From the sequence record LR756504.1: a stretch of 64,000 nt of DNA. The stretch is one strand, 5' to 3'. Both the position numbers and the translations under genes were made by a program. This document shows, piece after piece, positions 25,865-60,723 of this stretch (positions are counted from its first letter, which is position 1; each line of letters begins with the position of its first letter). Below the pieces are notes generated by a model. The model had not been told where the DNA came from and did no database searches. It was given only the letters and a program-made list of their open reading frames with translations.

Positions 25865-25896
25865 TTTGGATTTTTACATTTTTATTCATATATTTG
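25865..25896 (+). promoter_or_regulatory. Bacteroidota-type promoter
   Basis: TTTG - 20 nt - TATATTTG (25889). Confidence 0.7.
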
Positions 25897-25933
25897 TAAG
25901 AATTCAACATTTTAAACAATAATCTCTTTTAAA

Positions 25934-27895
25934 ATGCCTAAACAAATAATACTCAGTGATGAATTGGTATCGGTTTTAAAATCTATCGATCATAGATTCT
26001 CTACAATACTTATTGATTCACATGAAAATAAGGAAGAAGTGGTTGATAATTCTTATATAGCTTTTTCTAAGGAAGAAGGTGAAGTATCATATTTACCAGT
26101 AAAGCGAGAAAATTCTAAAAATGGAAAAGAGTTAACTGAAAGTGATAAATGGCTAACTGGTAGACAGTCCATGTCTATTGGAAAATGGGTAAGAGCAATT
26201 TTACAAATTAAAGGTGTCCAATATAAAGAGTTTGAATTGGAAGAATTTGTAAATCAATATAAATATCAACAATTTGATTTTAATTTTATTTTAGTTAAAG
26301 GTCAAGATATTGTTAAATGGTACAAAGAAAAAAATTACGATAATCGGTATGGTAGTGGTAGTCTTTTTAATAGTTGTATGAGAGCCGTAAGCTCGGACTA
26401 TTTCAAAATTTATAGAGATAACGAAAATGTTTCCATGTTGTGTCTAATAAATAAAGAAACAAAGAAACTTATTGGTAGAGCTATTGTATGGGATAAAACT
26501 TCTATCAATGGCGAAGATTCGGTATTTTTAGATAGAATATACACAACAAAATCTCTATTTGAATCAGCAGTTAAAAATTATTGTAAAAGTAGAGGTTGGT
26601 ATTTTAAAAATAATCAAGGTAGTGGAAATGTATCTATTAGTAATGGTAAAAAAACTATAGAAAATCCAAATATTATATTTCATCTAAATGAAAAAATAAA
26701 TTGGGAAAATTGTCCTAAAATGCCATATATTGATACAATGTCATTTTTTGGATATATTTCTAATAATGATAAATGTTTACCAGTTCTTACTTCATATAAT
26801 AAATGTAATTTTAAATTTAATTTTAAAGGTACTGATGGAAATATTTATGATAATGTAAATTATGATAGTAGAAGAGACTTACTTAATAGGAGATTGACTG
26901 TTGGTGATTTAATTTTAATTAAATATGATAATGGATATGCTTGGATTGACGATACTGATTATGGAAGAGTATATCAAGAGAATTTTATATTTAATATTAA
27001 ATTGATCAAAGGTAGTGATGAATTGATAACTGTTAAAGGCGTAAAGAAAAATTTAAAATCTAAATTTAATCATAGTGATACTAATATAATATCACATATT
27101 GGTGATGTAGTCCCAACAGAATATCATGTATATTTATTTGATTTATTTAAAGATGATTTAATTTTTGAAGTAGATAATACTTATCAATATTTAAAACAAT
27201 ATACTCAATTTAAATTATATTCTATATGTTCAGAACATTTTAAAATGGTTCTTGATGAAGCACCACAGACAGTAATTTCGAGTGATATTACACAACTATC
27301 TAAAGAGCTATTAAATATAATTTTAGAAAAAAATCCAGAAATTATATTTAATATTGATATTCAAAAATTTATTAGAACTCAACATTTATTTGAAGAGACG
27401 GTTATTCAAAAATATATTATAAAATATCCCGATTTGTCTTTAATCGAAGGTAAAATAGCTATAAAGGTATCTAAAAAAATAATTGAAAAAATATGCAAGT
27501 CTAATATGTATAAAGTCACTAAAAATGAAATAGAAAATAAGTATGGTGTATCGAAATGTTTTTTAACAGATAGTGGTGATGATGATATTTATATTCAAGC
27601 TGAACCATATTGGTTTACTTGTTTATCACTTAAAACTAAAGTAAAACGTTTGCGAGAATTAAGTAAAATAGAAAAACTTATAAAATTTATAACTAAAGAT
27701 AAATCTATACCATATGATTATGGTGAAGTTATTGGTGTAAATGATGGATATAGAAGAGATTCCATTCGAGTTAAATTTAAAAATGGTGATGTTTATTGTT
27801 CAGTTAAAGAATTAACAATTTTAGAAAGAGATTTAAAAGAAAACTTCTATCAATATTTAAATACGCAATCACACTATGATATGTTTAGATTTTAG
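25934..27895 (+). CDS. SCM/GRAIVW/DRIY family paralogue 2
   Basis: SLFNSCMR, GRAIVW, FLDRIY, GWYFK, PYIDTM; leaderless. Confidence 0.85.
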   Translation: MPKQIILSDELVSVLKSIDHRFSTILIDSHENKEEVVDNSYIAFSKEEGEVSYLPVKRENSKNGKELTESDKWLTGRQSMSIGKWVRAILQIKGVQYKEFELEEFVNQYKYQQFDFNFILVKGQDIVKWYKEKNYDNRYGSGSLFNSCMRAVSSDYFKIYRDNENVSMLCLINKETKKLIGRAIVWDKTSINGEDSVFLDRIYTTKSLFESAVKNYCKSRGWYFKNNQGSGNVSISNGKKTIENPNIIFHLNEKINWENCPKMPYIDTMSFFGYISNNDKCLPVLTSYNKCNFKFNFKGTDGNIYDNVNYDSRRDLLNRRLTVGDLILIKYDNGYAWIDDTDYGRVYQENFIFNIKLIKGSDELITVKGVKKNLKSKFNHSDTNIISHIGDVVPTEYHVYLFDLFKDDLIFEVDNTYQYLKQYTQFKLYSICSEHFKMVLDEAPQTVISSDITQLSKELLNIILEKNPEIIFNIDIQKFIRTQHLFEETVIQKYIIKYPDLSLIEGKIAIKVSKKIIEKICKSNMYKVTKNEIENKYGVSKCFLTDSGDDDIYIQAEPYWFTCLSLKTKVKRLRELSKIEKLIKFITKDKSIPYDYGEVIGVNDGYRRDSIRVKFKNGDVYCSVKELTILERDLKENFYQYLNTQSHYDMFRF

Positions 27896-27916
27896 ATAAT
27901 TTTAAAAGGTTTATTT

Positions 27917-28222
27917 ATGGTAAAAATTGAAAATAGTAAAATTGACTTCATAAGAGGTAAAAAATATGTATTCAAAATGTTTATGTATTACCTTAATTTT
28001 AGAATGAAAGAAAAAATGCCAAATAGAGTTATTGCTATGGTGGAAGTTGGAATATCCATTGGACCAAGACTTAACAACATAGTTTATTTTTCAGCAACTA
28101 CTGAATTTATAAGAGTAGATGGTGTTTATAAATTGAAAATTGATACAAAGTTAGAAAAAATATTAAACGAAAGATTCACAATCAAAGAATTATTTAAAAA
28201 AGTCGAAGAAAACTTAAACTAA
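27917..28222 (+). CDS. Hypothetical protein
   Basis: 101-aa co-oriented ORF. Confidence 0.55.
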   Translation: MVKIENSKIDFIRGKKYVFKMFMYYLNFRMKEKMPNRVIAMVEVGISIGPRLNNIVYFSATTEFIRVDGVYKLKIDTKLEKILNERFTIKELFKKVEENLN

Positions 28223-28234
28223 TGAAATAAGAGT

Positions 28235-31808: not shown

Positions 31809-33296
31809 ATGGTACTTGACTTTGAATACAAAGCTGGAAAGCTAATAATTTCTGAAATTAATGAACAAGGTAATGTGGTGTTCAATCATTATAATTGGAA
31901 AAATCCAAGGAAATTTGTTCCTACAACATTTGATGATAAAGATAAACATCCAAAATATCAAACGTGGGATAAAAAGGCTGTTAAATTAGTTCCAACAAAT
32001 AATCCGAATCGTTTTTCAATATATGAATTTGTAGATGCTCTCGAAAAAGAAGAACAAGATAGATTATTTGCGCCACAATATCCTAAAATGTTTTTTATAG
32101 ATATTGAGACCGAAATCCTTCCTACAGGATTTGTTGATCCTAAAGATGCTACAACCAGAGTACTAACAGTTGCAATTGTAAATGATGATAATGTATTGAT
32201 ATTAGGATTGAAACCTCTAACACAACAAGAGTTAGAGAAAGTAAAGGATGATATTGAAAACCATTTTAAAGATTTCAATTTAAAAATAAAATTGAAATAT
32301 AAATATTTTGGTGGATATGATAATCCAGAAAAGGAAATGATGAAATATTTATTTCATGATTTGATTCCAAAGATGCCTGTTATTACAGGATGGAATTTCG
32401 TAGATTACGACTGGACATTTTTAATTAATCGTTGTAGAAGATTGGGTATTGATCCATCGGTATCCAGTCCTACTAAAAGATTGGAGAAAGTATTTGGTAC
32501 ACCATATGAAGTTCCTGCTCATAGATTGGTAATTGACTATATGGAAATTTGGAAGAAGCCTTGGAATCAGTTCGTAAAAGTTAAAGAAAGTAATAGCTTA
32601 GATTGGGTAGGTAGACACTTATTCAAAAATATATCTAAACATCATTACGAAGGTTCTTTACAGGATATGTATGAAAACAATTTTGTAGAGTATGCTTTTT
32701 ATAATGCTGTTGATACTATACTTGTTAGAATGATTCACGAAAAGACTAGATTGTTGGATATTATAATTTCAATGGCCAATCTTTCTAAAATTAGATTATG
32801 TGATTTTGCATATAAAAATCTTAATGCAACTTTGGTTTCCACTGAAGGATTTTTAAGAGGTAAATTTAGAGAAGAAAAGAACATAGTTCTTTGTAAAGAT
32901 TTTGAAGATGATGCTGCTGAAACTATTGCAGGGGGTTATGTAAAAAGCCCAGAAAAAGGACTACAAGAGTGGATAGCAACATATGACTTTGCTTCACTAT
33001 ATCCGCGAACTCAGATGGAGTTGAATATTGCGCCTGAAACATTTAGAGGATTTCAATTAAAAGATGATTTGGGTTATGCTGAATTTGATGGTGTAATTAA
33101 TAAAATTGAAGAAACTGATATTGTTTGTGTTAATGGTGCGGTATTTAGTAATGAGAAATCTGTTACTGTAGGGTTTTTGGAAGATGTGTATGCACAGAGA
33201 AAGCATTATAAGGGATTAATGGATAATGCGAAAAATGATTTAAAAGAGGTAGAAAAAGAGCTTAAGAAATTAGAAGATGAATTGAATAATTTGTAA
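31809..33296 (+). CDS. Family B DNA polymerase, N-terminal piece (3'-5' exonuclease plus motif A) of a split enzyme
   Basis: DIETE, TGWNFVDYDW, YNAVDT and DFASLYP are present; the ORF stops after RKHYK plus a coiled helix, lacking KxxxNSxYG and DTDS. Confidence 0.88.
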   Translation: MVLDFEYKAGKLIISEINEQGNVVFNHYNWKNPRKFVPTTFDDKDKHPKYQTWDKKAVKLVPTNNPNRFSIYEFVDALEKEEQDRLFAPQYPKMFFIDIETEILPTGFVDPKDATTRVLTVAIVNDDNVLILGLKPLTQQELEKVKDDIENHFKDFNLKIKLKYKYFGGYDNPEKEMMKYLFHDLIPKMPVITGWNFVDYDWTFLINRCRRLGIDPSVSSPTKRLEKVFGTPYEVPAHRLVIDYMEIWKKPWNQFVKVKESNSLDWVGRHLFKNISKHHYEGSLQDMYENNFVEYAFYNAVDTILVRMIHEKTRLLDIIISMANLSKIRLCDFAYKNLNATLVSTEGFLRGKFREEKNIVLCKDFEDDAAETIAGGYVKSPEKGLQEWIATYDFASLYPRTQMELNIAPETFRGFQLKDDLGYAEFDGVINKIEETDIVCVNGAVFSNEKSVTVGFLEDVYAQRKHYKGLMDNAKNDLKEVEKELKKLEDELNNL

Positions 33297-33301: not shown

Positions 33302-33323
33302 AACGGGGTTTTAAACCCCGTTT
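33302..33323 (+). terminator. Intrinsic terminator
   Basis: AACGGGGTTTTAAACCCCGTTT hairpin followed by a T-run. Confidence 0.75.
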
Positions 33324-33328
33324 ATTTT

Positions 33329-33337
33329 TTATATATA
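33329..33337 (+). promoter_or_regulatory. Putative late promoter TTATATATA
   Basis: ~20 nt before the leader-bearing gene 33358. Confidence 0.5.
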
Positions 33338-33357: not shown

Positions 33358-33708
33358 ATGAAATTTTTAAAGAAATTTAACTCTTTCGTTAATGAAAGCA
33401 AAACCTTTACTGCTGGTTTATACCCACACTTTGAAACAGATGATATAATTTATATTGAAAAAGTTCACGAAAATGGCGATGTAGAAGCTTTTGAATTGTT
33501 AGCTACTTTGGATGATATAGTAAAATGGTTTGTAGATAAACACGGTAGAGATACTTTTGAAGATCAATTTAATCCAGAAGAAGGACATACCACCAAAGAT
33601 TGGGATATGTCAGATGAAGAAATTGAAGAGGTTGTTAAAAATAATGATCAATATCTTAAAGAATTCTGTGAAGATAAAATAGCTGAGTGGGTAAAAGTTT
33701 CTGAGTAA
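33358..33708 (+). CDS. Acidic hypothetical protein with capsid-targeting-like leader
   Basis: MKFLKKFNSFVNES. Confidence 0.7.
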   Translation: MKFLKKFNSFVNESKTFTAGLYPHFETDDIIYIEKVHENGDVEAFELLATLDDIVKWFVDKHGRDTFEDQFNPEEGHTTKDWDMSDEEIEEVVKNNDQYLKEFCEDKIAEWVKVSE

Positions 33709-33711: not shown

Positions 33712-35964
33712 ATGATTGATAAATTGTTAAATGTTCTTATCGGATTATTACAAGAAAAAGAGTTGATATTAAGTCCTACATTATTTTCTAAATTAGAATT
33801 GATGAATGATAAAGTTGCAGATTTTATTTTAAAATGTGCTTCAGAAAATGAAGATACTGATATGTCATATTTTGATATAACTAAAGATGATGGTATGGTA
33901 TCATTTTTAAAAAATAGATGGGATGAAGAAGTCACAGATAAATTTAATTCCAATAGAAGAGAAAAAATGAAAATTAGCCGCCTTGTAATGGTACTATCAT
34001 CTAAGATGAATGTTCAATTTACGAACACTGAAATAGAACATTTCATCAACAAATATAAAGCATCACAAAAAGTAAGAGAAGATGAAGAAACCATAAAGCT
34101 TGTGAAAGGACAAGATATAGTATTCTATTATAATGAAGATAATTATCAACCAGGTGGTGGTGAATATTGTTCTTTATATAGATCGTGTATGAGATATGAT
34201 GATTGTTCAAATTTTTTTAAAGTTTATACTGATAATTCTAATGCTTCATTGTGTGTTTTATTATCAAATGATAAGAAAGTTGAAGCAAGAGCTATTGTGT
34301 GGAATAACATAGTAGTCAATGGTAAAATTGGCANNNNNNNNNNNNNNNNNNNNNNCATAAATGATGGTGCTGAACAAGCAATGAAAAATTATGCGGAAGA
34401 AAAAGGTTGGTGGTTTAGAGTAAAGCAAAGTAATGATTATAATGAAATATTTAATGGTGTGGAATCTCTCTATGATCCTAAATTGAGAGTATTATTACCA
34501 ATTAATATAAGATGGGGTGGTAGTAATATTAGAAAACCTTATATGGATTCTATGAGATTTTTAAAATATACTATTCAAAATAATGAATTAGTATATTGTC
34601 TTGAAAATTATTCTAATAATAATGATTATATGGAAATGTGGGATAGTCAAATTGGTGGTTATAGTAATAATAATAGTAGATATATTAATCCGTACAAGGC
34701 TATATTAAAAATATCACAACTTTCTAATATATCGTTAGATAAAATAAAAAGAATAGATATTAAAGATGGTGTCGAAGAATATAGTGTTGGTGATGATGTA
34801 TATGTTAAAATTGATATTAGTAATGATTCTATAAGAAATATTATAGTGGGTGATCCCAGTTTAGTAGCTATAGCAGGTGAAGTTAAAGAATTTGTTAATG
34901 GAAGAACATTAGTAGTTGATTTACATAATGAAATATCAGAGTATGTTAAAGATAATACTGAAGAAGTATTTTATGAAACTATCAGTAAAAAAACAATTTC
35001 AGAATTAATAAGTTCGAGTGATATCATTAAAGTTAAAGTAGTATTAAAAAAATTAGTATCTGAATATTTCACATTTTTTAAAAAACATTTTAATCTTAAT
35101 GATTATGTTATTGTAACTAAAGAATTATCAAATTATATGGATAAACATAGTCTACCAAATGGTGCTAAAAAATTAGTTGGTAGAATTTATAAATTGATAG
35201 AAACAGATAGAGAACATATAGCAAATATAGAATTAAGAGATGTTAAATGGGTTAAAATTGTTGGTGATTATACTGATTATAAAAGCTTGATAATACCAGA
35301 AATTGCTTTAGAACCTATTAATATTATGACTTTAGATAATAAAAATTTAAAAAGTATTGATTATATAGTATCATTAATTGATAACGATAATATTAAACCA
35401 ATATTGTATAATTTGATATGTGAAGTACTTTTATCGAAATATATTAAAAACTCTATTGTTATAAAAACACCAGAAATAGGGGATAGAATTATTATAACAA
35501 GAGATAATAAAAATTTAAGAAGTGTTAACAATGGTTGTATTGGAATAATTAACGATACTGATAATGGTTATTTTGGTGTTGTATTTAATGAGCCTGTAAG
35601 AAATGGTAGCTCTTTACATAGTGTATGTGAGCAAGGTTGGGGTAAAATTATAGAACGTGATATATTTGAAGTGGTAAATAAAAATTTCAAAATGGAAGAA
35701 TTTACATTACTTATTAATCATAGTGACTCATTTTTAAAAGTTCTTTCAAACAATGTTACTGATTTTGACGTTAAAAGATTAATTAGTATTTTTGATATAT
35801 CTGATGATATTTTCTTCGAGAATGTAGATTTTACAGAGGTTGCATCTGCTATTTTATATGATGACAATAAGATGAAAGAGCTATTGAAAGAAATTTCAGA
35901 AGATAATATTTATTTTTATGATATAGAACATGGTGAAATTATTTATAAAAAACAAACATTTTAA
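33712..35964 (+). CDS. SCM/GRAIVW/DRIY family paralogue 3 (22-N gap over the DRIY motif)
   Basis: SLYRSCMR, ARAIVW, GWWFR, KPYMDSM; N-terminal extension ending LLQE; C-terminal SH3-like IGDRIII...FGVVF. Confidence 0.8.
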   Translation: MIDKLLNVLIGLLQEKELILSPTLFSKLELMNDKVADFILKCASENEDTDMSYFDITKDDGMVSFLKNRWDEEVTDKFNSNRREKMKISRLVMVLSSKMNVQFTNTEIEHFINKYKASQKVREDEETIKLVKGQDIVFYYNEDNYQPGGGEYCSLYRSCMRYDDCSNFFKVYTDNSNASLCVLLSNDKKVEARAIVWNNIVVNGKIGXXXXXXXXINDGAEQAMKNYAEEKGWWFRVKQSNDYNEIFNGVESLYDPKLRVLLPINIRWGGSNIRKPYMDSMRFLKYTIQNNELVYCLENYSNNNDYMEMWDSQIGGYSNNNSRYINPYKAILKISQLSNISLDKIKRIDIKDGVEEYSVGDDVYVKIDISNDSIRNIIVGDPSLVAIAGEVKEFVNGRTLVVDLHNEISEYVKDNTEEVFYETISKKTISELISSSDIIKVKVVLKKLVSEYFTFFKKHFNLNDYVIVTKELSNYMDKHSLPNGAKKLVGRIYKLIETDREHIANIELRDVKWVKIVGDYTDYKSLIIPEIALEPINIMTLDNKNLKSIDYIVSLIDNDNIKPILYNLICEVLLSKYIKNSIVIKTPEIGDRIIITRDNKNLRSVNNGCIGIINDTDNGYFGVVFNEPVRNGSSLHSVCEQGWGKIIERDIFEVVNKNFKMEEFTLLINHSDSFLKVLSNNVTDFDVKRLISIFDISDDIFFENVDFTEVASAILYDDNKMKELLKEISEDNIYFYDIEHGEIIYKKQTF

Positions 35965-36904: not shown

Positions 36905-38056
36905 ATGATAGAAAAATTTCATATACCATCTTACGAAGAAGCTGTTGATTTAGTTAATAGAACTGGCTCATTAACTTTCTACGAATCTGTTCAATATGTT
37001 GATGGATATAAAATTTCTATTTTCAATTATAGACTTGCTTCTTATAATGACTTCGTAGAAAATAACGCGTATGAAATGAGAGGTTTGGTATATGTATTCA
37101 ATTTAGATGGAACTTTTTATAAGTCTTTTAGATTATTGCATAAATTTTTCAATTTAAATCAAGTTGCCGAAACACAATTTGAATTGGTTAAAGATTTAAA
37201 AATTGATAATGTTACTAATAAAGAAGATGGTTCTGTTATAAGTTTCATACAGTTACCAAACGGTAAAATATTGGCTAAATCTAAAATGTCGGTATTAGAT
37301 AACACACAATCTTTGATGGCGCAAGAAATATATGATACTAATCCTAATATAAAAGCAGTAGTTGATTACACATTGATTAATAATTTAGTTGCCGTGTTTG
37401 AATTAGTATCACCATTTAATAGAGTCGTACTAAAATATGAACAAACTGAATTGATTTTAATACGATTGAGAGATAACACAAATGGCTTTTATTTACCTTT
37501 AAATACTTTAGGTGAATTATTAAATGATGTAAAAACACCAAAAGTAGAGGCATATACTACTTGGGATGAAATATTAGCATTTGTTGATGTATCAGAAGAT
37601 ATAGAGGGTGTCGTAATAGAATGTGGGGGTGATTTAGTAAAGTATAAAAGTAAATGGTATTGCGATAGACATCATCTATTAACTGATTATATACATAGAC
37701 CTGATTTTCTAATTGAAAAAGTATTAGATGAACAGATAGATGATGTATTAGGTCAAATAGATGAAAAGGATGTGGAAGTAAGAGCTTTAATAGATTCTGT
37801 CATAAAAAGAGTTAATGTTTTTTTAATGGAGACACTTAAAGACATAAATTCTAAAGTAGAAGAATTTGAAACATTTTATAAAAAGGATGTTAAGGCATTT
37901 TCTATAGCTAATAAAAAAACTAAATATTTTGGAATGTATATGGCAGTGATAAATAACCAAGAAGAGCCATTTAATATAGTTTCTCGATATTTGAAAAAGA
38001 AGACTTATTATTTAGGTAAAGCTAAAGAATTTGTTGAAACAGGTAAACTAAAATAA
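36905..38056 (+). CDS. T4 Rnl1-like RNA ligase
   Basis: EMRGLV, LHKFFNLN, KEDGS (adenylated Lys), FELVSP.N.VV, EGVV, KYKSKWY. Confidence 0.88.
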   Translation: MIEKFHIPSYEEAVDLVNRTGSLTFYESVQYVDGYKISIFNYRLASYNDFVENNAYEMRGLVYVFNLDGTFYKSFRLLHKFFNLNQVAETQFELVKDLKIDNVTNKEDGSVISFIQLPNGKILAKSKMSVLDNTQSLMAQEIYDTNPNIKAVVDYTLINNLVAVFELVSPFNRVVLKYEQTELILIRLRDNTNGFYLPLNTLGELLNDVKTPKVEAYTTWDEILAFVDVSEDIEGVVIECGGDLVKYKSKWYCDRHHLLTDYIHRPDFLIEKVLDEQIDDVLGQIDEKDVEVRALIDSVIKRVNVFLMETLKDINSKVEEFETFYKKDVKAFSIANKKTKYFGMYMAVINNQEEPFNIVSRYLKKKTYYLGKAKEFVETGKLK

Positions 38057-39020: not shown

Positions 39021-40622
39021 ATGAGCAAACAAGACATGAATAAAAAGCATCTAAAGAAAGATTATTCTGATTTTTTGAAAGAAAGTCAAACACCAGCGGA
39101 TTTACCTGCTACAGAAAAAGATGCTCTAATAAAACTCGATCATGCACCAGCTGGTAAAGTTAGGGTGAGATTTGCACCATCGCCAACAGGTGGATTACAT
39201 ATTGGTGGATTGAGAACTGCTATTTATAATTATTTGTTTGCTAAAAAACATGGCGGTGATTTCCTTTTAAGGATTGAAGATACCGATAGAACCCGCTTTG
39301 TTGACACGGCAGAAGATTACATTAAGGATGCCTTGGCGTGGGTAGGTATTACACCAGATGAATCTCCTTGGGTTGGTGGACCACATGCACCATACAGACA
39401 ATCTGAAAGAGATTACAAGCCTTTCATTGAAGAACTTATTGCTAAAGGTGGTGCATATTATGCATTTGATAGTTCGGAAGAACTTACTGCTGCGCGTGGT
39501 GATAGGCAAGATTGGTCTTATAATAGACAAACGAGAATGAATATGAAAAATTCATTCACAATGTCAGAAGAAGAAGTTGAAGCTAAAATCAAAGAAGGTA
39601 ATTATGTTGTAAGATTTAATACACCTGAAAATAAAACTGTCAGTTTTACTGATATTGTTAGAGGTAATGTATCTTTTAACTCTAACCAAACAGATGATAA
39701 AGTACTTATTAAATCTGATGGTATTCCAACATACCATTTTGCTAATATTTGTGATGACCATAACATGGAAATCACCCATGTAATTAGAGGTGAAGAATGG
39801 TTACCGTCTACACCACTTCACATTATGTTGTATGATGCTTTTGGTTGGACACCTCCGAAATTTGCACATTTACCGCTATTACTTAATCCTGATGGAAAAG
39901 GTAAATTAAGTAAGAGAAAAGCAAATGAATATGGTATTCCAGTATTCCCTCTTGATTGGGAACAAACTGATGATAAGGGTGATAAAAATGTAAATATGGG
40001 TTTCAAAGGTAAAGGATATGAATCTGATGCTATTGTAAATTTCCTATGTTTACTTGGTTGGTCTCCTGGTGATAATAGAGAGATGTTGTCAATGGATGAA
40101 CTAGTGGATGCATTCTCACTTGAAGGAATTCAAAAGGCTGGTGCTAAATTTGATATTAAGAAAGCAGATTGGTTCAATCAACAGTACTTGAAAAAAGCTA
40201 AAACTGATGATGTATTTAAATCATCTGGAATTTCTGACGAAGAAAAAGATAAATACACACCTGAACAACTCGATAAAATTGCCGAGCTTGCAAAAGAACG
40301 TTCTGTATTTAGAACTGATTTTAAAGCGGTTGTTGATATTTTCTTCAGTGTGCCAGCAATTGATGCAACTAAAATAGAGCCAGAATTTAAAACAGTGTTC
40401 TCTAAATTTGTTGATGAATCTGAAGGTATTGAATGGAGAGGTGATGTTATTAAACAAAAAATATTTGACATCTGTAATGAAGTTGAAATTAAGATGGGTA
40501 AAGTAATGCCTTCTCTTAGAATGGCATTAACAGGTGGTATCCCTGGTCCAGATTTAATGACTACTTCTGAAATTCTTGGAAAAGAAGAAACTATTAGTAG
40601 ATTAAAAACAGCATTAGCATAA
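39021..40622 (+). CDS. gltX: Glutamyl-tRNA synthetase with N-terminal extension
   Basis: RVRFAPSPTGGLHIGG, LRIEDTD, YRQSER, PTYH, THVIRGEEW, KLSKR, LRMALTG. Confidence 0.96.
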   Translation: MSKQDMNKKHLKKDYSDFLKESQTPADLPATEKDALIKLDHAPAGKVRVRFAPSPTGGLHIGGLRTAIYNYLFAKKHGGDFLLRIEDTDRTRFVDTAEDYIKDALAWVGITPDESPWVGGPHAPYRQSERDYKPFIEELIAKGGAYYAFDSSEELTAARGDRQDWSYNRQTRMNMKNSFTMSEEEVEAKIKEGNYVVRFNTPENKTVSFTDIVRGNVSFNSNQTDDKVLIKSDGIPTYHFANICDDHNMEITHVIRGEEWLPSTPLHIMLYDAFGWTPPKFAHLPLLLNPDGKGKLSKRKANEYGIPVFPLDWEQTDDKGDKNVNMGFKGKGYESDAIVNFLCLLGWSPGDNREMLSMDELVDAFSLEGIQKAGAKFDIKKADWFNQQYLKKAKTDDVFKSSGISDEEKDKYTPEQLDKIAELAKERSVFRTDFKAVVDIFFSVPAIDATKIEPEFKTVFSKFVDESEGIEWRGDVIKQKIFDICNEVEIKMGKVMPSLRMALTGGIPGPDLMTTSEILGKEETISRLKTALA

Positions 40623-41351: not shown

Positions 41352-42560
41352 ATGTCTAATAACAATAAATTAGTTATAGTTCCTAAAAGAACAAATTATA
41401 GCGTTTATCCTCCAATAACCGCACCAGAAATACCTATTACATTGAATGTGAACCTATTGAAAGACGTACACTCTGTTCAAACGAGTTCATATAAATGTGA
41501 TAGAATGATGCAGTATATTATAGGCTTTTTGAAAAAAAAGAAAAATGTTCATGTTCAAGAGGATGCATATGGTAATATTTATGCAACTAAAGGAAATGCT
41601 GATTTATATCCAGCAATTGTTTCTCACACAGATACAGTTCATAGTATTCATGAACATTTTCAGGTTATGCAGGATGAAAATATTATTTGGGCATTTTCAA
41701 ATGATAAACGAACTCAAGTAGGTGTTGGTGGTGATGACAAAGTGGGTGTGTTCATGTGTCTTTCTATGCTTGAATTACTTCCAAAAGTTAAAATTGCTTT
41801 TTTTAAAGACGAAGAAGTTGGTTGTATTGGTTCAGGTAGAGCTAATATGCAATTTTTTGATGATTGTGGATTTGTTTTGCAATGCGATAGAAAAGGTTCT
41901 GACGACTTCATTTATAATGCGGGTACAGAATTGTATGGTGCTAATTTTGAAAAAGCTGTTGCACCATATTTAGAAAAACATGGGTATAGAGAAACTACGG
42001 GGTTAATGACAGATGTTTTAGAATTGAAGGGAAAAGGATTAGCTGTAGCATGTGCTAATATGTCATGTGGTTATTACTCGCCTCATTCTGATAATGAAGT
42101 TCTTGATTTAAATGCAGTGCAAAAATGCTATAATTTAGTATCCGAATTGATGTTAGATTTCATAGATACTCGTTTTCCACACGATAAAAACAATAAGCAT
42201 AGTAAGGGGGGCTATTCGTACTCATATAGTGGGTACGGGTATGGGCGCGATAATGATGATGATTTTGACAACTACGACTATGGAAGAAGCTCGTATTTTA
42301 GAAATGATAACAGAGAAAATATCGAAGATGACGAAACGGATTTTGATGATATTTATAACAATGGTGGCTTATCTATTAGTGAAGATGATATTTTAGAAAA
42401 TTGGGGACTTACTAAAAAAGAGAATGATTATTATGCAGTAAATGATAAATGTAAGGAGTGTAAAGAAATTCTAGAAGAAGACATTGATGGTATAAAACTT
42501 TGTCCATGTTGTAATTCGTACAAACATATACCAAAAATGTATTTAAGAGATACAATTTAA
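41352..42560 (+). CDS. M28/M20-like zinc peptidase with acidic linker and C-terminal zinc ribbon
   Basis: SHTDTVH, GGDDKVG, DEEVGC.GS, QCDR, TDV, GYY.PH; CKEC...CPCC. Confidence 0.8.
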   Translation: MSNNNKLVIVPKRTNYSVYPPITAPEIPITLNVNLLKDVHSVQTSSYKCDRMMQYIIGFLKKKKNVHVQEDAYGNIYATKGNADLYPAIVSHTDTVHSIHEHFQVMQDENIIWAFSNDKRTQVGVGGDDKVGVFMCLSMLELLPKVKIAFFKDEEVGCIGSGRANMQFFDDCGFVLQCDRKGSDDFIYNAGTELYGANFEKAVAPYLEKHGYRETTGLMTDVLELKGKGLAVACANMSCGYYSPHSDNEVLDLNAVQKCYNLVSELMLDFIDTRFPHDKNNKHSKGGYSYSYSGYGYGRDNDDDFDNYDYGRSSYFRNDNRENIEDDETDFDDIYNNGGLSISEDDILENWGLTKKENDYYAVNDKCKECKEILEEDIDGIKLCPCCNSYKHIPKMYLRDTI

Positions 42561-45844: not shown

Positions 45845-46279
45845 ATGATTAAGAATTTTAACAATTTTATTCAAGAATCTAAAAGCCCTACTAAAATACT
45901 ACAATCATTAACGGATTTAGTACAAAAAAGATTTAAAAATATTGACGAAAATTCACATATTTTCTGTAATATTCTTCATAAGTACTTTAATTTTGATAAA
46001 TTTCTATTTGTCTCTAAATTAGAATTTTCTGATAATGTTAAGGATATTAGACATGTATACGTTTATTTAAATGGTAGATATTTAGATGGTGATGGTTTTC
46101 ATACAAAAACTGATATAATGGATAAATTTAAGATTAGTAATGAAACTTTTAATGATTTAGCTTTTATTTCCGATTTGGGTAAACTTCATGAATATTCTAA
46201 AATTGTTATTACAACTTTATCAGAAAAGCAAACAAAAGAAATAGAACATTTAGTTAAGCAATTTAGTCAGATGTTATAA
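45845..46279 (+). CDS. Hypothetical protein with capsid-targeting-like leader
   Basis: MIKNFNNFIQES; HVYV...YLDGDG. Confidence 0.65.
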   Translation: MIKNFNNFIQESKSPTKILQSLTDLVQKRFKNIDENSHIFCNILHKYFNFDKFLFVSKLEFSDNVKDIRHVYVYLNGRYLDGDGFHTKTDIMDKFKISNETFNDLAFISDLGKLHEYSKIVITTLSEKQTKEIEHLVKQFSQML

Positions 46280-46317: not shown

Positions 46318-47160
46318 ATGTTATTTAAATCTATGAATAAAGCTGATAAGTACTATATTGAAAATCTGAATAAAATTCTTACAGAAGGTTGTAAAGATGA
46401 AAACCCAAGACCTAAATATAAAGATGGTGTTTCCGCACACTCTTATTTTATAACACAAGTATTTGAAGAGTATGATATTAGTAAAGGTGAGTTTCCGATA
46501 ACCACTTTAAGAAATACTGCCACTAAAATGGGTATACAAGAAATATTATGGATATATCAAGATCAAAATTCATCACTTGAATCTGCTCATAATAGAGGAA
46601 TTATGTGGTGGGATGAATGGAATATTGGTGATGGAACTATAGGACAAAGATATGGTGCTACTGTTGGTAAGTGGAAATTAATGGATAATTTATTATATGG
46701 ATTAGAACATGATCCATTTAGTAGAAGACATGTAATTAATTTATTACAAGAAGGTGATTTAAAAGAAACTAAAGGTTTATATCCGTGTGCGTTTGAAACT
46801 ATATGGTCTGTTAGAAAAGTGAATGATATTTTATATTTAGATATGACATTAAATCAAAGATCGAATGATTATATTATGGCTGGATATATTAACAAGATTC
46901 AATATGTAGCTTTACAGATGATGGTAGCTTCCCATTTAGGATATAATATTGGTAAGTTTTGTCATTTTGTACAAAATCTTCATATTTATGATAGACATAT
47001 TGATGCAGCTAAAGAAATATTAAATAGAACACCATTAAATATTATTCCTATGCTTGAATTGACATCTAAGAAATTCTATGATATTACACTAAGTGATTTT
47101 ATAATAACAAACACTACAGGTATAAAAAAATTAACATCTACATTGGAGATTGCTATATAA
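46318..47160 (+). CDS. thyA: Thymidylate synthase
   Basis: SRRH, LYPC (catalytic Cys), QRSND, N...Y, HIYDRH. Confidence 0.9.
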   Translation: MLFKSMNKADKYYIENLNKILTEGCKDENPRPKYKDGVSAHSYFITQVFEEYDISKGEFPITTLRNTATKMGIQEILWIYQDQNSSLESAHNRGIMWWDEWNIGDGTIGQRYGATVGKWKLMDNLLYGLEHDPFSRRHVINLLQEGDLKETKGLYPCAFETIWSVRKVNDILYLDMTLNQRSNDYIMAGYINKIQYVALQMMVASHLGYNIGKFCHFVQNLHIYDRHIDAAKEILNRTPLNIIPMLELTSKKFYDITLSDFIITNTTGIKKLTSTLEIAI

Positions 47161-48925: not shown

Positions 48926-48934
48926 TAATATATA
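48926..48934 (+). promoter_or_regulatory. Putative late promoter TAATATATA
   Basis: ~19 nt before the GTG start at 48954. Confidence 0.55.
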
Positions 48935-48953: not shown

Positions 48954-50984
48954 GTGATATATTTAAAGAGATTTTTACAATATGATGCAATATTAGAAAG
49001 CTTATTACTTGAAAAAGTACTATATTTTGGTGAAAAAATGAGAGATGTACTTAAAAATATGAAGCATCCATATGCAAAGTATATGGTAAATATGGATCAT
49101 GGTGATAATTTAGAAGATACTGATAATTCTTATATTGAATATAGTCCTAAATTGGGTATGGTTTCTTGGCTTCCTGCTAATAGAGAAATAGATTTCCAAA
49201 CTAAACAAGAATTACCTGAAACTGAAAAGTGGGCCACTAAAAAAAGACAAGATGTTTCTATAGGTAAAATTGTTTCTGCTATATTGAAAAAATCACCATA
49301 TGTCAATATATCTGAATCTGAATCTGAATTAGAAAAGTTTATTAACGAATATAAAGCTATACAAAATACAGGTAGTTTTAAATTAGTTAAAGGTTATGAT
49401 GTAAAGAAATATTATTTTGAAGGTAATTATGATCATGAGTCGGATGAAAGTTCACATTCTTCATTGTTNNNNNNNNNNNNNNNNNNNNNNNGTTGTCAAG
49501 AGTATTTTAGTGTCTATATTAAAAATCCTAATGTATCATTATGTATTTTATTGACAGATGATGATAAGATACAGGGTAGAGCTATAGTATGGTATAATTC
49601 TACTATAGATGGTAAACCAGAAGTTTATATGGATAGAATATATGCGGTTAGTGATTCTATCACCGATAAATTTAAATCATATGCACATTCTAACGGTTGG
49701 TATTGTAAAACAAAACAAGGATCAGAATATTATGTTGTGAGCAATGGTAAGTTGGTAATAGAACATCCTAATATAAAAGTTATATTACCTGATGGTGATT
49801 GGGAAACTTGGGAAAAACCATATATGGACTCATTGAGATATTTTTCATATGATGTTATTGATGGTAAATATATTCCAGTTTTATTTAATTATTTCATGCA
49901 AAATGCTTCAAACTGGAAACAAAAATGGGACGAAACAAATGGATTTTTTATTTCCAATAGATATTATGTTGATACACTTAAAGAAGTTAGAGATTTATCA
50001 TCCAATACAGGATTAGATTTTAATAATTTATTATTAGCAAATCCTACTAAAATAAATGGAAATCCTGAGATATGGAAAGTAGATGATAAAAATGTTTTAG
50101 TTATGAATTACTATTCAACTATTATATCAAGTGTGATAAGAAATGAAAGCGAAGAAGATATAATGAAATTAAAACCATTTATTTCGAATTATGAAACGCA
50201 CGAACTTGTTAGAAAAATTGGTTCAAAAGTTTTATGTGAAGAATATCGCTCTGATATAATGATGGATATGCTAGAAAATACTAATGTTTATATTAAGGGA
50301 ATTGATAGTTCTGAAATAAGAAACTTCATTCAAAAGATATTAGGTGTGCAAATAATGTCTAAAGAAATTAATGAAAATTTTTCTAAGGTTAGAGAATTTA
50401 TAATTGTGTTAAGGCCTATAACATTTGGTATAATTTTAAATGATAATTTTGAATTAAATATTAATATAGATGGTGATATTAATGCTTTGGAAAATGAATA
50501 TTACACAAAGCTTAAAGATGATGAAAAAAGTAAACGCTATTTAATTTCTATTATTGAAAATGAATATAATATTGGTGGAGAAAGTGCAGTTATAAAAATG
50601 TGTAAAGAATATATTAGAACAGTTGTTTTACAAGATAAAGATGTAATTGAAATGTATAACGAATATATAGCAAATAGTCGTCAAGTAAAAATGAATTTTA
50701 TAGGAAAATATTTCAATGAATTTGTACAAAGTGTTAATACTACATATTTGCTTAACATAATAAAAGAAAATACGGAAAAAATCAGAGAATTTGCTATAAA
50801 AAATATTTTAACTAATAATCCATCTTTTGCAATTAATGAAATATTAGAATCTAATACAGAATTCGGAAAAAATACTAGAATTTCATATGTTCAAAAATGG
50901 CTTAGATTAAATTTTCCTAATGTAGAAGTCAAAGCTGAAATTCGTGGTGATAAATTTTGTTATATTGTGGACAAATTTCCTTAA
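48954..50984 (+). CDS. SCM/GRAIVW/DRIY family paralogue 4 (23-N gap over the SCM motif)
   Basis: GRAIVW, YMDRIY, GWYCK, KPYMDSL; leader MIYLKRFLQYDAILESLLLE. Confidence 0.82.
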   Translation: MIYLKRFLQYDAILESLLLEKVLYFGEKMRDVLKNMKHPYAKYMVNMDHGDNLEDTDNSYIEYSPKLGMVSWLPANREIDFQTKQELPETEKWATKKRQDVSIGKIVSAILKKSPYVNISESESELEKFINEYKAIQNTGSFKLVKGYDVKKYYFEGNYDHESDESSHSSLXXXXXXXXXCQEYFSVYIKNPNVSLCILLTDDDKIQGRAIVWYNSTIDGKPEVYMDRIYAVSDSITDKFKSYAHSNGWYCKTKQGSEYYVVSNGKLVIEHPNIKVILPDGDWETWEKPYMDSLRYFSYDVIDGKYIPVLFNYFMQNASNWKQKWDETNGFFISNRYYVDTLKEVRDLSSNTGLDFNNLLLANPTKINGNPEIWKVDDKNVLVMNYYSTIISSVIRNESEEDIMKLKPFISNYETHELVRKIGSKVLCEEYRSDIMMDMLENTNVYIKGIDSSEIRNFIQKILGVQIMSKEINENFSKVREFIIVLRPITFGIILNDNFELNINIDGDINALENEYYTKLKDDEKSKRYLISIIENEYNIGGESAVIKMCKEYIRTVVLQDKDVIEMYNEYIANSRQVKMNFIGKYFNEFVQSVNTTYLLNIIKENTEKIREFAIKNILTNNPSFAINEILESNTEFGKNTRISYVQKWLRLNFPNVEVKAEIRGDKFCYIVDKFP

Positions 50985-51037: not shown

Positions 51038-51069
51038 GTTGTAGACTTAAATAAATATTAGTATATTTG
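51038..51069 (+). promoter_or_regulatory. Bacteroidota-type promoter
   Basis: GTTG - 20 nt - TATATTTG (51062); implies the real start is ATG 51088. Confidence 0.55.
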
Positions 51070-53581: not shown

Positions 53582-54121
53582 ATGGCATATACAAATAATT
53601 TCATAAAAGCAATGCCTTATATTTTCCTTCACGAAGGAAATAAATTTACAAATATAGCAAATGACGCTGGTGGGCCTACACTATATGGTGTATCTCTTAG
53701 ATTTTTACAATCCATACACGAAGATATTAATCATGATGGTGTGGTAGATGTGTTAGATATTAAATCTTTAACTCAAGATGAAGCAAAAGATATTTATTTT
53801 CATAATTTTTGGAGAATAGCATATGATTCTTTTCAAGAAAGAGTGGCCATTAAAGTATTTGATGTTGCTGTAAATGCGGGAAGTCAAAGAGCACATATTT
53901 TATTACAAAGAGCATTAAATGCGCTTGGATCAAAAATTACAGTGGATGGTATGTTGGGTAAACAAACAATTTCCGAAATAGCAAAATATACAGATAATCA
54001 AATTTTACAACAATATTGTGCTGCCCAAAAAGCCTTTTATCAAAGTTTAGTTACAAGTAATCCTTCACAACAAAAATTTTTGAATGGGTGGATTAATAGA
54101 AGTCAATGGATACCCGCTTAA
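53582..54121 (+). CDS. GH108 family peptidoglycan hydrolase
   Basis: HEG...N...DAGGPT.YG, FDVAVNAG, VDG.LG..T, F..GW.NR. Confidence 0.9.
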   Translation: MAYTNNFIKAMPYIFLHEGNKFTNIANDAGGPTLYGVSLRFLQSIHEDINHDGVVDVLDIKSLTQDEAKDIYFHNFWRIAYDSFQERVAIKVFDVAVNAGSQRAHILLQRALNALGSKITVDGMLGKQTISEIAKYTDNQILQQYCAAQKAFYQSLVTSNPSQQKFLNGWINRSQWIPA

Positions 54122-55233: not shown

Positions 55234-55234
55234 T

Positions 55235-56985: not shown

Positions 56986-57060
56986 TCACCCTGACAGGAC
57001 TCGAACCTGCATTGTCGGGGTTAGAATCCCAACAGTCTAACCAAATTGACGTACAGAGTG
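56986..57060 (-). tRNA. tRNA, most likely Arg (TCT), with atypical anticodon arm; CCA not encoded
   Basis: Acceptor CACTCTG/CAGGGTG-A, T arm GCAGG-TTCGAGT-CCTGT; anticodon region TTGGG-ATTCTAA-CCCCG. Confidence 0.75.
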
Positions 57061-57066
57061 TTATTA

Positions 57067-57698: not shown

Positions 57699-57703
57699 AA
57701 CAA

Positions 57704-58048: not shown

Positions 58049-58077
58049 AGATAGATAAACTTATCTCTAAAAACAAG
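58046..58077 (-). promoter_or_regulatory. Bacteroidota-type promoter
   Basis: Minus strand CTTG - 20 nt - TATCTTTG. Confidence 0.6.
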
Positions 58078-58094
58078 AAAAATGTTTAATATTT

Positions 58095-58595: not shown

Positions 58596-58613
58596 TTGCT
58601 CTTTAATTTCTTT

Positions 58614-58622
58614 TATATATTA
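58614..58622 (-). promoter_or_regulatory. Putative late promoter TAATATATA
   Basis: ~18 nt upstream of the ATG at 58595. Confidence 0.5.
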
Positions 58623-58644
58623 GAAATATGTAGTAGAGTAAATA

Positions 58645-59112
58645 TTAAGATAAAAATTTTAATAGTGGTTTTTGTTGTTCTTCTATTAAATCAACTGCCT
58701 CATTTTTAGAAAAGAACCCTGCTTCTGATATTTCTAATTTATCAAGGAAATATCTTAGAATCATATTATTGTATAATTTGAAATCTAATTCATTTCTATT
58801 AATTATTAATACGTAATATTTCAATTCTTTATTTTTAGCACCTTTACTATAGTTTAAAACGCCATTAATAGAATTTTCTAATTTATGTGGATGTATTTTT
58901 ATATTAGCTTCTTCTTCTAATTCTGTTATAGCAGTTTCTAAATCCGACATATCTGTTTCGTTGTGTCCTTTAGGAATTGACCATTTATATGGTTTGTCTT
59001 TAAATTTTGTTGGATGTACTAATAATATTTTATTCTCCATGATGAGAACTATACCACTAAGAAAATGTTTGGTGTTATTTTTATTAAAAGTATCAAATTT
59101 ATCAAAATACAT
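58645..59112 (-). CDS. Nudix hydrolase
   Basis: WSIPKGHNE...LETAITELEEEANI Nudix box; N-terminus MYFDKFDTF. Confidence 0.85.
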   Translation of the reverse strand: MYFDKFDTFNKNNTKHFLSGIVLIMENKILLVHPTKFKDKPYKWSIPKGHNETDMSDLETAITELEEEANIKIHPHKLENSINGVLNYSKGAKNKELKYYVLIINRNELDFKLYNNMILRYFLDKLEISEAGFFSKNEAVDLIEEQQKPLLKFLS

Positions 59113-59136
59113 ATTTTTTAATTATTTTTGTTAAAA

Positions 59137-60708
59137 TTATACAGGTTTATATGTACCGTCTGTGGAAGACCATTGTTGTTTAGTATTATTTGTCATTTTA
59201 GAGGATAGATAATATTTAGGATTCTTACTATCTTTAATTTTTAATTTATATGTTCCTGGATTATTTAATGGTTCAACACAATCGGCTGGTACAAAGTAAT
59301 CAGAAATTTCACTCTCTGTAAAATAATACCCTCTCATCGTACCTTTAAATAGAGTATCATTACTATCTCTAACTGTAAATACTTTACCAATATATTTAAT
59401 CATATCCGCCCAACCATACTTTGCTATATCAGCAGTTATTTTTATTTTTTCACCTGGTTGAAGTAATCTATATTCAGAATTCTTAAATTCATTATTTGAT
59501 GAACCTGTAGTATTGTTAAAATATTTTAAAGTATCTAAGTATGGTTTGGATATCCTACTCCATCCAACATTAGGCAACTCAAATTTTAACACATCATTAT
59601 ATGTAATGCTTCCATTTGAAATTGTACTATCTTTATGTGATTGAACTACTTTAAACCACCAATTTTTTCTTTTAGCAAATGTTTTAAATAATTCTACTTC
59701 TGCTTCAGAATTATAGTAAATTCTATCCATGAAATTTATTTTCTTACCATCTTCCATTTCAACACCATTCCATACAATAGCTCTACCCATTAATTTACCA
59801 TCATCATTTAATAATATTAATAATGATACATTAGGATTATCTGTATAAACAGTAAAGTAATTATCACACTTATCATGTTTCATGCAACTTTTATTTAATG
59901 GTGATTCCTCGAAACCTGATGTTTGATAACTCGAATAATTATACCATTTTTTAATATCTTGTCCTTGTACTATTTGAAAGTTTTTAAAGATAGTAACTTC
60001 CAATTGAATAGATTTAAAAGTATTACCAAATTTTTCAATTTCTACATCCGCAAAAGATTGTCCTTCTTTTTGCATCAAAGCTCTTACTAGTTTACCTATC
60101 GATGTTGTTTGTCTATATCTATTTTTCCAAAATTCTTCATTCTCGACATTTTTTTCTCTATTAGCTGGTAGGAAACTTACCATACCTGGTTCACCTTCAA
60201 TATTCAAATATAAATGTTGAAGAGATTCTTTATTATTTTCTAAACTTAAAATAAATTGTGCTATTTTATCATCCTTGGGAAATTTTTCTAAAATCTCAAT
60301 AATTTTAGAGCTTAAAAATTCCTTATTTCCTATAGATAGTGGATTTTCTATTTGTTCTGGTGTCAAAGCCAATAATTTTTCGGTTGGTTTAATAGTATGA
60401 GCCTGTCCTCTTCTTTCACCTTTCTTAATTGTTATTAATTTCTTTAAATACAACCAACTTATATGTCTTGCATAACTGTTAGTATTTTCTTTTTGTTTAG
60501 TTATTGGATTAACACCAACTAATTTTGTAAGCGTCATACCTTCTGGGTTAGCTTGAAGGAGTTTAATATAATGTGAAATCTTTTCCCAATTTCTGAATTT
60601 TAAACCTGATACTTCACCCTTATCAATTCTATTAAAGTAATGATCATCTCTCATTTCTTCTTTTTCTTCATTTAGAAAATCATCGAAAAATAGCATTGGA
60701 TGTAACAT
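59137..60708 (-). CDS. SCM/GRAIVW/DRIY family paralogue 6 with leader, N-terminal winged-helix and inserted SH3-like domain
   Basis: MLFFDDFLNE leader; SPLNKSCMKH, GRAIVW, FMDRIY, NWWFK, KPYLDTLKY. Confidence 0.85.
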   Translation of the reverse strand: MLHPMLFFDDFLNEEKEEMRDDHYFNRIDKGEVSGLKFRNWEKISHYIKLLQANPEGMTLTKLVGVNPITKQKENTNSYARHISWLYLKKLITIKKGERRGQAHTIKPTEKLLALTPEQIENPLSIGNKEFLSSKIIEILEKFPKDDKIAQFILSLENNKESLQHLYLNIEGEPGMVSFLPANREKNVENEEFWKNRYRQTTSIGKLVRALMQKEGQSFADVEIEKFGNTFKSIQLEVTIFKNFQIVQGQDIKKWYNYSSYQTSGFEESPLNKSCMKHDKCDNYFTVYTDNPNVSLLILLNDDGKLMGRAIVWNGVEMEDGKKINFMDRIYYNSEAEVELFKTFAKRKNWWFKVVQSHKDSTISNGSITYNDVLKFELPNVGWSRISKPYLDTLKYFNNTTGSSNNEFKNSEYRLLQPGEKIKITADIAKYGWADMIKYIGKVFTVRDSNDTLFKGTMRGYYFTESEISDYFVPADCVEPLNNPGTYKLKIKDSKNPKYYLSSKMTNNTKQQWSSTDGTYKPV

Positions 60709-60714
60709 TTTTAC

Positions 60715-60723
60715 TATATATAA
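60715..60723 (-). promoter_or_regulatory. Putative late promoter TTATATATA
   Basis: Just upstream of 60708; nearly symmetric, so it could also serve the divergent GIY-YIG gene. Confidence 0.45.

Follow-up and report, generated by a model that had tools for sequence, protein, structure and literature searches.

Within a 64,000-nucleotide (nt) stretch of LR756504.1 (the window), an unannotated 636,363-bp "uncultured phage" record, we analyzed a family of paralogous genes that appears in two formats. Members of one format lie behind promoters of the host type and carry no N-terminal leader, whereas members of the other are associated with the motif T[AT]ATATATA and begin with a short leader peptide containing an (L/I)xE site. 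This division, proposed in the initial annotation, recurs among additional copies in the same genome and in three diverged megaphages. The record contains 14 copies of the family, six of them in the window, and it belongs to the Mahaphage clade, where it is one of the four largest complete genomes, with a host predicted among the Bacteroidetes (PMC7162821). The family is a lineage-specific expansion, each copy of which joins a core of about 275 amino acids (aa) to a variable C-terminal part, and promoter type and leader appear to have been switched together several times within it. All start codons referred to below are predicted ones.

The six paralogues in the window share 25-32% identity over the core, and their C-terminal parts are unrelated. 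Paralogue 2 (P2; 25934-27895, +; 653 aa) begins at the core (MPKQIILS...), as had been claimed, and lies behind a host-type promoter at 25865-25896 (+) that consists of a -33 TTTG (25865-68), a spacer of 20 nt and a -7 TATATTTG (25889-96), located 37 nt before the ATG. The same intergenic region holds, on the minus strand, the TAATATATA (25825-25833) of a divergent 1983-aa gene (19854-25805). Paralogue 5 (P5; 51088-53004, +; 638 aa from the ATG at 51088) begins MPNTKQKSTKAIILS, without a leader motif, and also follows a host-type promoter (51038-51069, +), with (g)TTG, a 20-nt spacer and TATATTTG at 51062-69, 18 nt before the ATG. The promoter assigned earlier to P5 was thus upheld, but its supposed start directly at the core was not: nine residues (PNTKQKSTK) precede the core, and they contain no leader motif. 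A TTG at 51067 is an unlikely start for P5 because it falls inside this promoter, and the database homologue P0001 has 638 aa, as does P5 from the ATG at 51088. Paralogue 1 (P1; 5962-8046, -; 694 aa), which lies outside the region addressed by the initial annotation, is leaderless (MQKCIILG...). It has neither promoter motif within 130 nt upstream, in agreement with the statement that it lacks a clear promoter, and a terminator-like hairpin is found there.

The remaining three paralogues bear leaders, and the phage motif was found where it had been reported for each. Paralogue 3 (P3; 33712-35964, +; 750 aa) is the second gene of an operon whose upstream region (33303-33337, +) comprises a terminator-like hairpin (33303-33321) followed by TTATATATA (33329-33337). 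The first gene (33358-33708, +; 116 aa) starts 20 nt after this motif and has itself a generic leader, MKFLKKFNSFVNE↓S, where arrows here and below mark candidate cleavage positions; the ATG of P3 follows 3 nt past its stop codon. The P3 leader is MIDKLLNVLIGLLQE↓K-ELILS (residues 1-15, 33712-33756). Paralogue 4 (P4; 48954-50984, +; 676 aa) has a GTG start, which is backed by the beginning of the database homologue P0015 (MRYLKKFLQYDTVLESLLL) and lies 19 nt after a TAATATATA motif (48926-48934, +); its leader is MIYLKRFLQYDAILE↓SLLLE↓K-VLYF (residues 1-21, 48954-49016). Paralogue 6 (P6; 59137-60708, -; 523 aa) starts at an ATG (60708) only 6 nt from its TTATATATA motif (60715-60723, -), a spacing that suggests a leaderless mRNA. 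Its 127-aa N-terminal extension combines a short leader (MLHPMLFFDDFLNE↓E, residues 1-14) with a winged-helix domain (residues about 32-123), which matches TrmB, MarR and ArsR-type Atlas models at template modeling (TM) scores of 0.5-0.66; the core (128-398) and a short C-terminal part follow. The claim that all three proteins carry (L/I)xE leaders therefore stood, and in P3 and P4 the site does end where the core begins; the FLNE of P6, however, lies about 113 residues away from the core.

Two of these genes are interrupted by runs of undetermined bases: 22 N at 34334-34355 in P3 and 23 N at 49469-49491 in P4. At the given length of each run the flanking frame is the same on both sides, and the resulting X residues (eight in P3 and nine in P4) take up exactly those alignment columns, free of gaps, in which the other paralogues have residues. 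The gap in P3 falls within the conserved FLDRIYT motif and that in P4 within the conserved NSCMRH motif ('YNSCMRH..'). These observations are consistent with continuity of both genes across the gaps, which is plausible, though not proven.

The same association holds beyond the window. Elsewhere in the record, P7 (leader MKYLKRFDFLFEGLILE↓K), P8 (MNILSFLYGLLQE↓K), L007 and L015 are leader-bearing and lie directly behind T[AT]ATATATA, L008 is leader-bearing and operon-internal, and L006 is leaderless and follows TTTG-N19-TATATTTG. Three more megaphages (LR756501, LR745206 and LR756502) encode family proteins that match P2 at about 30% identity; in these genomes the count of leader-bearing copies is 11 of 11 behind T[AT]ATATATA and none of four behind TAnnTTTG, examples of the leaders being MKINNYIDFISE↓SNISIILE↓AN and MVKKYFEFINE↓NFELILE↓SD. 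When 41 family copies from the four genomes were pooled, the ratio of leader to no leader was 17:1 behind the phage motif versus 0:7 behind TAnnTTTG (Fisher p = 1.7e-5), with the reservation that these copies are related and hence are not independent data points. On the phylogenetic tree, the 14 copies of LR756504.1 form one clade (support 99/98) in which the two states are interspersed; they differ between the sisters P2 and P7 and between P1 and P3, as they do between L024 and L028 in another genome. Since sister paralogues are found in different states, we conclude that promoter and leader have apparently switched together repeatedly. Database homologues start at positions that match the predicted starts.

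To characterize the two promoter types, we counted motifs over a 288.6-kb piece of LR756504.1 (45% of the genome), which is also the basis of the leader counts given below unless otherwise said. T[AT]ATATATA occurs 82 times, and 68 of these occurrences are fully intergenic in a sequence of which intergenic DNA makes up 7%. It lies within 100 nt upstream of 64 open reading frames (ORFs) on the same strand. Distances from the motif to the start codon fall into two classes, one of 4-6 nt (18 genes) and one of 17-25 nt, as seen for the motifs belonging to 60709-60723 (-) and 9492-10085 (-); the shorter class would correspond to leaderless mRNAs made from this promoter. The genes for the portal, two tail-sheath proteins and two giant proteins of 1983 and 4864 aa are all preceded by T[AT]ATATATA, and the variant AAATATATA occurs 21 nt before the ATGs of the prohead protease and major capsid genes. 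The intergenic bias and the position before virion genes argue that T[AT]ATATATA represents the phage's own class of virion-gene promoters, as judged from sequence.

The Bacteroidetes primary-sigma promoter consensus comprises a -33 TTTG and a -7 TAnnTTTG about 19-21 nt apart. TAnnTTTG by itself was barely enriched upstream of genes in this 27% G+C genome (46 sense vs 35 antisense) and was rejected as an unreliable promoter marker; only the composite with the -33 element serves. The strict composite TTTG-N18-21-TAnnTTTG was located upstream of 16 genes in sense and of 4 in antisense orientation, and a looser TTG-N18-22 composite upstream of 25 versus 8. The spacers in P2 (N20), L006 (N19) and P5 (TTG-N20) correspond to the expected Bacteroidetes -33/-7 layout. 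Composite motifs also precede genes for an RNA ligase, a glutamyl-tRNA synthetase (GluRS) and peptidases. P2 and L006 (TTTG-N19-20-TATATTTG) thus resemble the sigma-A promoters of the predicted host phylum, the Bacteroidetes (PMC7162821). P5 differs in having only TTG at -33.

The leader is by no means confined to this family. Its consensus is M-K-x-[IL]-K-[KS]-F-x-x-F-[LIV]-x-E, in which the position just before the first F may also be given as x, and examples behind T[AT]ATATATA include MKYLKKYNTFLNE, MSFIKKFNDFLNE, MKNIKKFIDFINE, MKFLKKFNSFVNE, MKHLKRFKTFINE and MSIKKFNEFLQE. A simple pattern for it was present on 29 of 329 ORFs (about 9%), from which manual curation retained 27 clear cases. 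The pattern occurred in 20 of 61 motif-driven genes versus 9 of 268 others (Fisher p = 3.6e-10), and several of the latter nine seem to lie downstream in operons; among internal 18-aa windows the match rate was only 1.8%. After removal of the leaders, BLAST found a match in only 5 of 351 protein pairs, indicating that the cargo is unrelated. Recognizable cargo includes a peptidoglycan-binding-domain protein, a class I S-adenosylmethionine (SAM) methyltransferase and a RecA-like ATPase. Synonymous codons vary at least as much in the leaders as in the genome (TTC 37% vs 22%, AAG 27% vs 14%, AAC 23% vs 12%), which argues for selection on the peptide. By sequence, the leaders end in FLNE, FINE, FVNE, SINE, FIQE, FLQE, LFE, ILE, LLQE or LLLE, a motif of the gp21 type. 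In the window, unrelated genes behind T[AT]ATATATA that carry such leaders are 17396-19069 (+; 557 aa, with the peptidoglycan-binding domain; MKYLKKYGNFSINE↓A), 45845-46279 (+; MIKNFNNFIQE↓S) and 4733-5116 (-; MIEKFNDYLYE↓N). In the literature on capsid-targeting sequences, huge phages and megaphages, we came upon no account of this kind of leader for these phages.

Within the paralogue family, leaderless copies begin (M)PKQIILS, (M)SKKIILG or (M)EKRIILS, and the predicted cut after LLQE, LILE or LLLE would yield N-termini of the type K-E-L-I-L-S, where the leaderless copies begin. In an AlphaFold2 (AF2) model of a leader-bearing member, the predicted local distance difference test (pLDDT) score was below 50 for residues 1-16 and above 90 for the core, weakly suggesting that the leader lies outside the fold.

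A protease suited to such sites appears to be encoded in the head module, which contains the portal, protease and major capsid protein genes. The 764-aa prohead protease ORF (L018:9797-12091, +; about -38718..-36424 (-) in window coordinates), whose true start is probably M53 (MKPVLIIEN..), matches phrog_207 (head maturation protease) at 2e-32 and T4 gp21 at E = 0.002 with 27% identity. The T4 gp21 cleavage consensus is (L/I)-x-E, in agreement with the sites LTE65↓A of gp23 and IAE10↓A of an internal protein (IP). Following the catalytic domain of the megaphage protease are 13 [LIV]-x-E sites (12 [LIV]AE and one LEE) with an exact 14-residue period over residues 342-510, and the density of [LIV].E in the repeat region is 6.9 per 100 aa versus 1.8 for the proteome. 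There are roughly ten of the 14-residue repeats, each including a [LIV]AE site; the units from residue 396 onward read like EYIAENLDKNIAYS, and an acidic C-terminal region follows this scaffold-like tail. The layout is as would be expected of a core that is digested to small peptides by an (L/I/V)-x-E-specific enzyme. The major capsid protein (L018:12154-13845, +; phrog_138) has an N-terminal ..DKWSPILEK.. comparable to ..NKWKPLLEG.. of T4 gp23, and its first 150 residues contain just two [LIVF]-x-E sites, ILE18 and IHE42, which are candidates for maturation cleavage. The T4 internal proteins start MKTYQEFIAE↓A and MKTFKEF, and a megaphage counterpart is MKNIKKFIDFINE↓S; T4 and megaphage leaders have in common the layout M-K-x-aromatic-K/Q-x-F...Phi-x-E. 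In T4, IPI-III and Alt are brought to the prohead core by an N-terminal capsid-targeting sequence of 10-20 aa; once gp21 has cleaved it off, these proteins are injected together with the DNA (PMC7411985, PMC5694885, PMC3012670). The possibility that the 1.4-kb stretch between portal and protease is non-coding was considered and rejected; Rfam and tandem-repeat scans of it were empty, and it is occupied by a 612-aa ORF on the opposite strand.

Together, these observations appear to favor a mechanism in which leader-bearing proteins are made late, packaged, cut after (L/I)xE and injected. This is the best-supported explanation and one that we hold with modest confidence; the motifs with their statistics, the association of promoter and leader, the protease with its repeats and the modeled fold are shown here, and timing, packaging, cleavage, injection and enzymatic activity are the parts that we infer. 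Copies of the first format, having a host sigma-A-type promoter (TTTG-N19-20-TAnnTTTG) and no leader, would be transcribed by the host polymerase, presumably early, and would act in the cytoplasm. Copies of the second format would combine the phage virion-gene promoter (T/A)(A/T)ATATATA with an N-terminal propeptide of the form MKYLKxF..Phi-x-E..LxLE↓K or ..GLLQE↓K. This propeptide would act as the capsid-targeting sequence does in T4, docking the protein on the prohead core, and the gp21-like prohead protease would then remove it by cutting after (L/I/V/F)-x-E. The mature protein, starting K-x-(I/L)(I/V)L at nearly the same residue as the leaderless copies, would be kept in the head until it passed, along with the DNA, into the next host. 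The 5' module of promoter and leader, found on at least 27 unrelated proteins in 288 kb, would behave as a portable packaging cassette, given its repeated gain and loss within the family. A more tentative extension, which we consider possible rather than probable, is that this cassette of virion-gene promoter and T4-like cleavable leader is universal in these phages, the largest known, and can turn any gene into a head-packaged, injected effector, with the GNAT-like family representing host-takeover or anti-defense enzymes that are both pre-loaded and early-transcribed and whose copies repeatedly toggle between the two.

Several observations weigh against packaging and injection, or against the underlying division. 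L012 is ambiguous, with a phage motif 63 nt upstream of an ATG that looks leaderless, and L014 has a 170-aa N-terminal extension with no motif nearby. (L014 and L015 are adjacent, at LR756504.1 420174-422187 on the minus strand; the L014 extension ends ..FLFSIMEQK-EIVLG, and the database proteins P0022-P0024 have the same long, low-complexity extension.) T[AT]ATATATA is not exclusive to virion genes, since a NadR-like gene, a peptidase paralogue and a thymidylate synthase-containing operon also lie behind it; the promoter therefore may not be strictly late, and its lateness is something that we infer. Sites of the form (L/I/V)-x-E are frequent in this Lys/Glu-rich proteome, at 1.8 per 100 aa. 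The LLLE before the core is conserved in distant homologues, in which the next residue varies (K, G, S or A), so this element may be part of the domain rather than, or besides, a cleavage site. A direct sequence search of the 636-kb record with T4 gp23 and the late sigma factor gp55 gave no match, which is not proof of their absence. Finally, the public sequencing runs that contain this DNA consist of the source DNA metagenome only, with no RNA run among them.

We weighed three other explanations. The leader could be a genuine targeting or assembly tag on late proteins that does not lead to packaging, cleavage and injection; it might localize proteins to a membrane, a compartment or a place of assembly, serve as a retained scaffold-binding helix, or control stability. 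Such a tag would fit a leader that is modular, selected as protein and restricted to genes behind the phage promoter, as well as cargo that includes enzymes of a cytoplasmic type (the SAM methyltransferase and the RecA-like ATPase) rather than classic ejection proteins. It fits less well with the closeness of the leader to the T4 capsid-targeting sequence, the Phi-x-E ending of nearly all examples, the gp21-like protease with its periodic [LIV]AE repeats, and the coincidence of the predicted mature N-terminus with the start of leaderless paralogues. On balance we regard this explanation, the main rival, as unlikely.

Another explanation is that the conserved 5' end works at the level of nucleotides, in promoter function, translation initiation or as a recombination linker, and that the peptide is a by-product. 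Many genes start 4-6 nt after the motif and thus probably yield leaderless mRNAs, the AT content of the first codons is extreme, and there is a precedent in T4-type phages, where conserved regulatory cassettes mediate gene shuffling (PMC2839356). However, synonymous codons in the leader vary above the genome average, the same peptide accompanies either class of spacing and is also found on promoterless genes inside operons, and it is conserved in megaphages whose family proteins are only about 30% identical to P2. We rejected a nucleotide-level account of the leader on the codon variation, and as a whole this explanation appears improbable. Least of all do we expect that there is no functional division, the extensions being variable ends or mis-called starts and the promoter association a product of descent or chance. 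The starts are indeed predicted, paralogues and their upstream regions can be inherited together, and TAnnTTTG alone scarcely distinguishes sense from antisense (46 vs 35); yet sister paralogues differ in state, with recurrence in four genomes, the leader is common to unrelated proteins, database homologues begin at the same positions, and the composite host-type motif is enriched in its strict (16 vs 4) and looser (25 vs 8) forms. This account is therefore highly improbable, and late synthesis followed by packaging, cleavage and injection is the reading that we retain.

We also searched for the identity of the core. It belongs to a very large family, with 4341 representative clusters at E <= 1e-3 and no annotation in the libraries that we searched; its named relatives are all from phages, as are the nearest Atlas clusters, and homologues in Cellulophaga phages and in Thermus phage TSP4 are annotated as hypothetical. 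Searches of the family against PHROGs, NCBIfam, PADLOC and PDB sequences gave no match, and no homologue has a precomputed Pfam domain. Four motifs are invariant in the core: S-C-M-R, G-R-A..W, D-R-x-Y and P-Y-x-D. An AF2 model of the P2 core (residues 1-277; pLDDT 91.5) comprises an N-terminal alpha/beta subdomain and a C-terminal subdomain (113-277). The latter aligned to GNAT structures with middling scores (VIA-align Z 5-6.8, root-mean-square deviation about 4 A over 110-120 residues); in Foldseek searches the leading PDB hits for the same region were nearly all GNATs (E about 4e-3 to 2e-2, TM 0.35-0.45 normalized to target length), and Atlas rows 5-10 for the core were GNAT or arginyltransferase clusters. 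In GNATs, the pyrophosphate of acetyl-CoA is bound by a Q/R-x-x-G-x-G/A loop between beta4 and alpha3. No conserved glycine was found in the beta4-alpha3 loop among 46 family sequences, where the consensus is instead FMDRIYTxxD. The core thus partly resembles the GNAT superfamily in that residues 113-277 align to many of its structures, but it differs in lacking sequence matches to Pfam, NCBIfam or PHROG acetyltransferase families, in having its own invariant residues and in an additional subdomain of about 110 aa at its N-terminus. Given the moderate matches, the missing loop and these invariant residues, we name the core GNAT-like only, and it is probably an enzyme. The proposal that the same activity is deployed twice was overstated. 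With 14 copies, unrelated C-terminal parts and an added winged helix in one of them, the family does not consist of interchangeable duplicates; its variable C-termini and the winged helix of P6 argue for specialization rather than redundancy.

Several other features of the region were noted. Upstream of the P3 operon, a family B DNA polymerase gene (PolB; 31809-33296, +; 495 aa) encodes only the N-terminal half, matching positions 110-505 of the 856-position phrog_262 profile as well as phrog_2062, a family of 502 positions. The polymerase thus probably consists of separate subunits, an arrangement known from some giant phages. We rejected the idea that the P3 operon is an insertion that splits the polymerase gene, as the 495-aa PolB fits an N-terminal-subunit family and the ORF after P3 is no polymerase. 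Genes of auxiliary metabolism lie at 12132-13076 (+), 39021-40622 (+), 36905-38056 (+), 46318-47160 (+), 61481-63061 (-) and 63079-63999 (-). By their translations, such genes look like phosphoribosyl pyrophosphate (PRPP) synthetase, glutamyl-tRNA synthetase, RNA ligase, nicotinamide phosphoribosyltransferase and a NadR/Nudix protein, and thymidylate synthase was identified by a PHROG match; several follow a composite promoter of the host type. Genes that resemble homing endonucleases (HNH or GIY-YIG) occur at scattered places in the genome (60740-61474, + in the window; L018:8185-10023, -; L018:2626-4578, -; L019:12847-14688, +), one of them between portal and protease, in the opposite orientation, and another beside P6. 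Another paralogue family is marked by a peptidase-like domain at the N-terminus (MDFKKTF..TQW.IPHGYEE) and, in some members, by long repeated C-terminal modules; its members are located at 14724-17324 (+), 42683-44842 (+), 41352-42560 (+) and 3483-4586 (-), and also at -17831..-16635 in window coordinates. The member at 14724 has a host-type promoter, and that at 42683 has both TAACTTTG and TAATATATA upstream. Besides the protein at 17396-19069, a second one related to the cell wall, endolysin-like and of 179 aa (53582-54121, +), matches phrog_315 at 2e-38 and has no leader.

A recognizable packaging leader would make the repertoire of injected proteins readable from sequence in uncultivated megaphages of more than 600 kb, whose genes are mostly unexplained. 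The leader would mark about 9% of ORFs, among them the peptidoglycan-binding protein, the methyltransferase and the ATPase, and, if this is true, dozens of different enzymes would be delivered with the DNA. If confirmed, T4-type head morphogenesis, with a capsid-targeting sequence, a gp21-like protease and periodic cleavage of a scaffold, would extend to the Mahaphage clade. A family that switches formats would also offer a concrete and testable case of how phages schedule takeover or anti-defense functions. In addition, a leader such as MKYLKKFNSFVNE could be used to load foreign proteins into the capsids of related cultivable phages, as the T4 capsid-targeting sequence does.

The system appears to fall under two known kinds, the capsid-targeted cargo of T4-type phages and the families of ejection-protein paralogues in giant phages; what would be new is that a single family has repeatedly moved between an early-transcribed and a pre-packaged format, together with the unusually wide use of the leader. 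As with the T4 internal proteins IPI, IPII, IPIII and Alt, a short N-terminal propeptide ending in (L/I)-x-E stands on otherwise unrelated proteins, the genes are under an AT-rich promoter with a -10-like element only, and a gp21-like protease is encoded beside the portal and capsid genes. Unlike in T4, the cargo here has no sequence homology to T4 internal proteins, and the leader, of 11-21 aa, is often bipartite, with a generic leader and an L-x-L-E just before the domain. It is also far commoner (at least 27 genes in 45% of the genome), and the family includes leaderless versions behind host promoters; packaging here is a prediction from sequence. A second comparison is with families A and B of SPN3US and with gp93-95, gp162 and gp163 of phiKZ (processed by gp245 or gp175), which likewise are expanded families of head-protein paralogues in very large myoviruses. 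In those phages, N-terminal propeptides are cut at x-E by a gp21-related protease, and related phages differ in copy number (PMC5694885, PMC7411985). Those families are cut at A/S/G-x-E, whereas the megaphage motif, like that of T4, is apparently L/I/V/F-x-E; the megaphage family has no known relation to Pfam PF12699, and a single family divided into packaged and early-expressed members has not been described in SPN3US or phiKZ.

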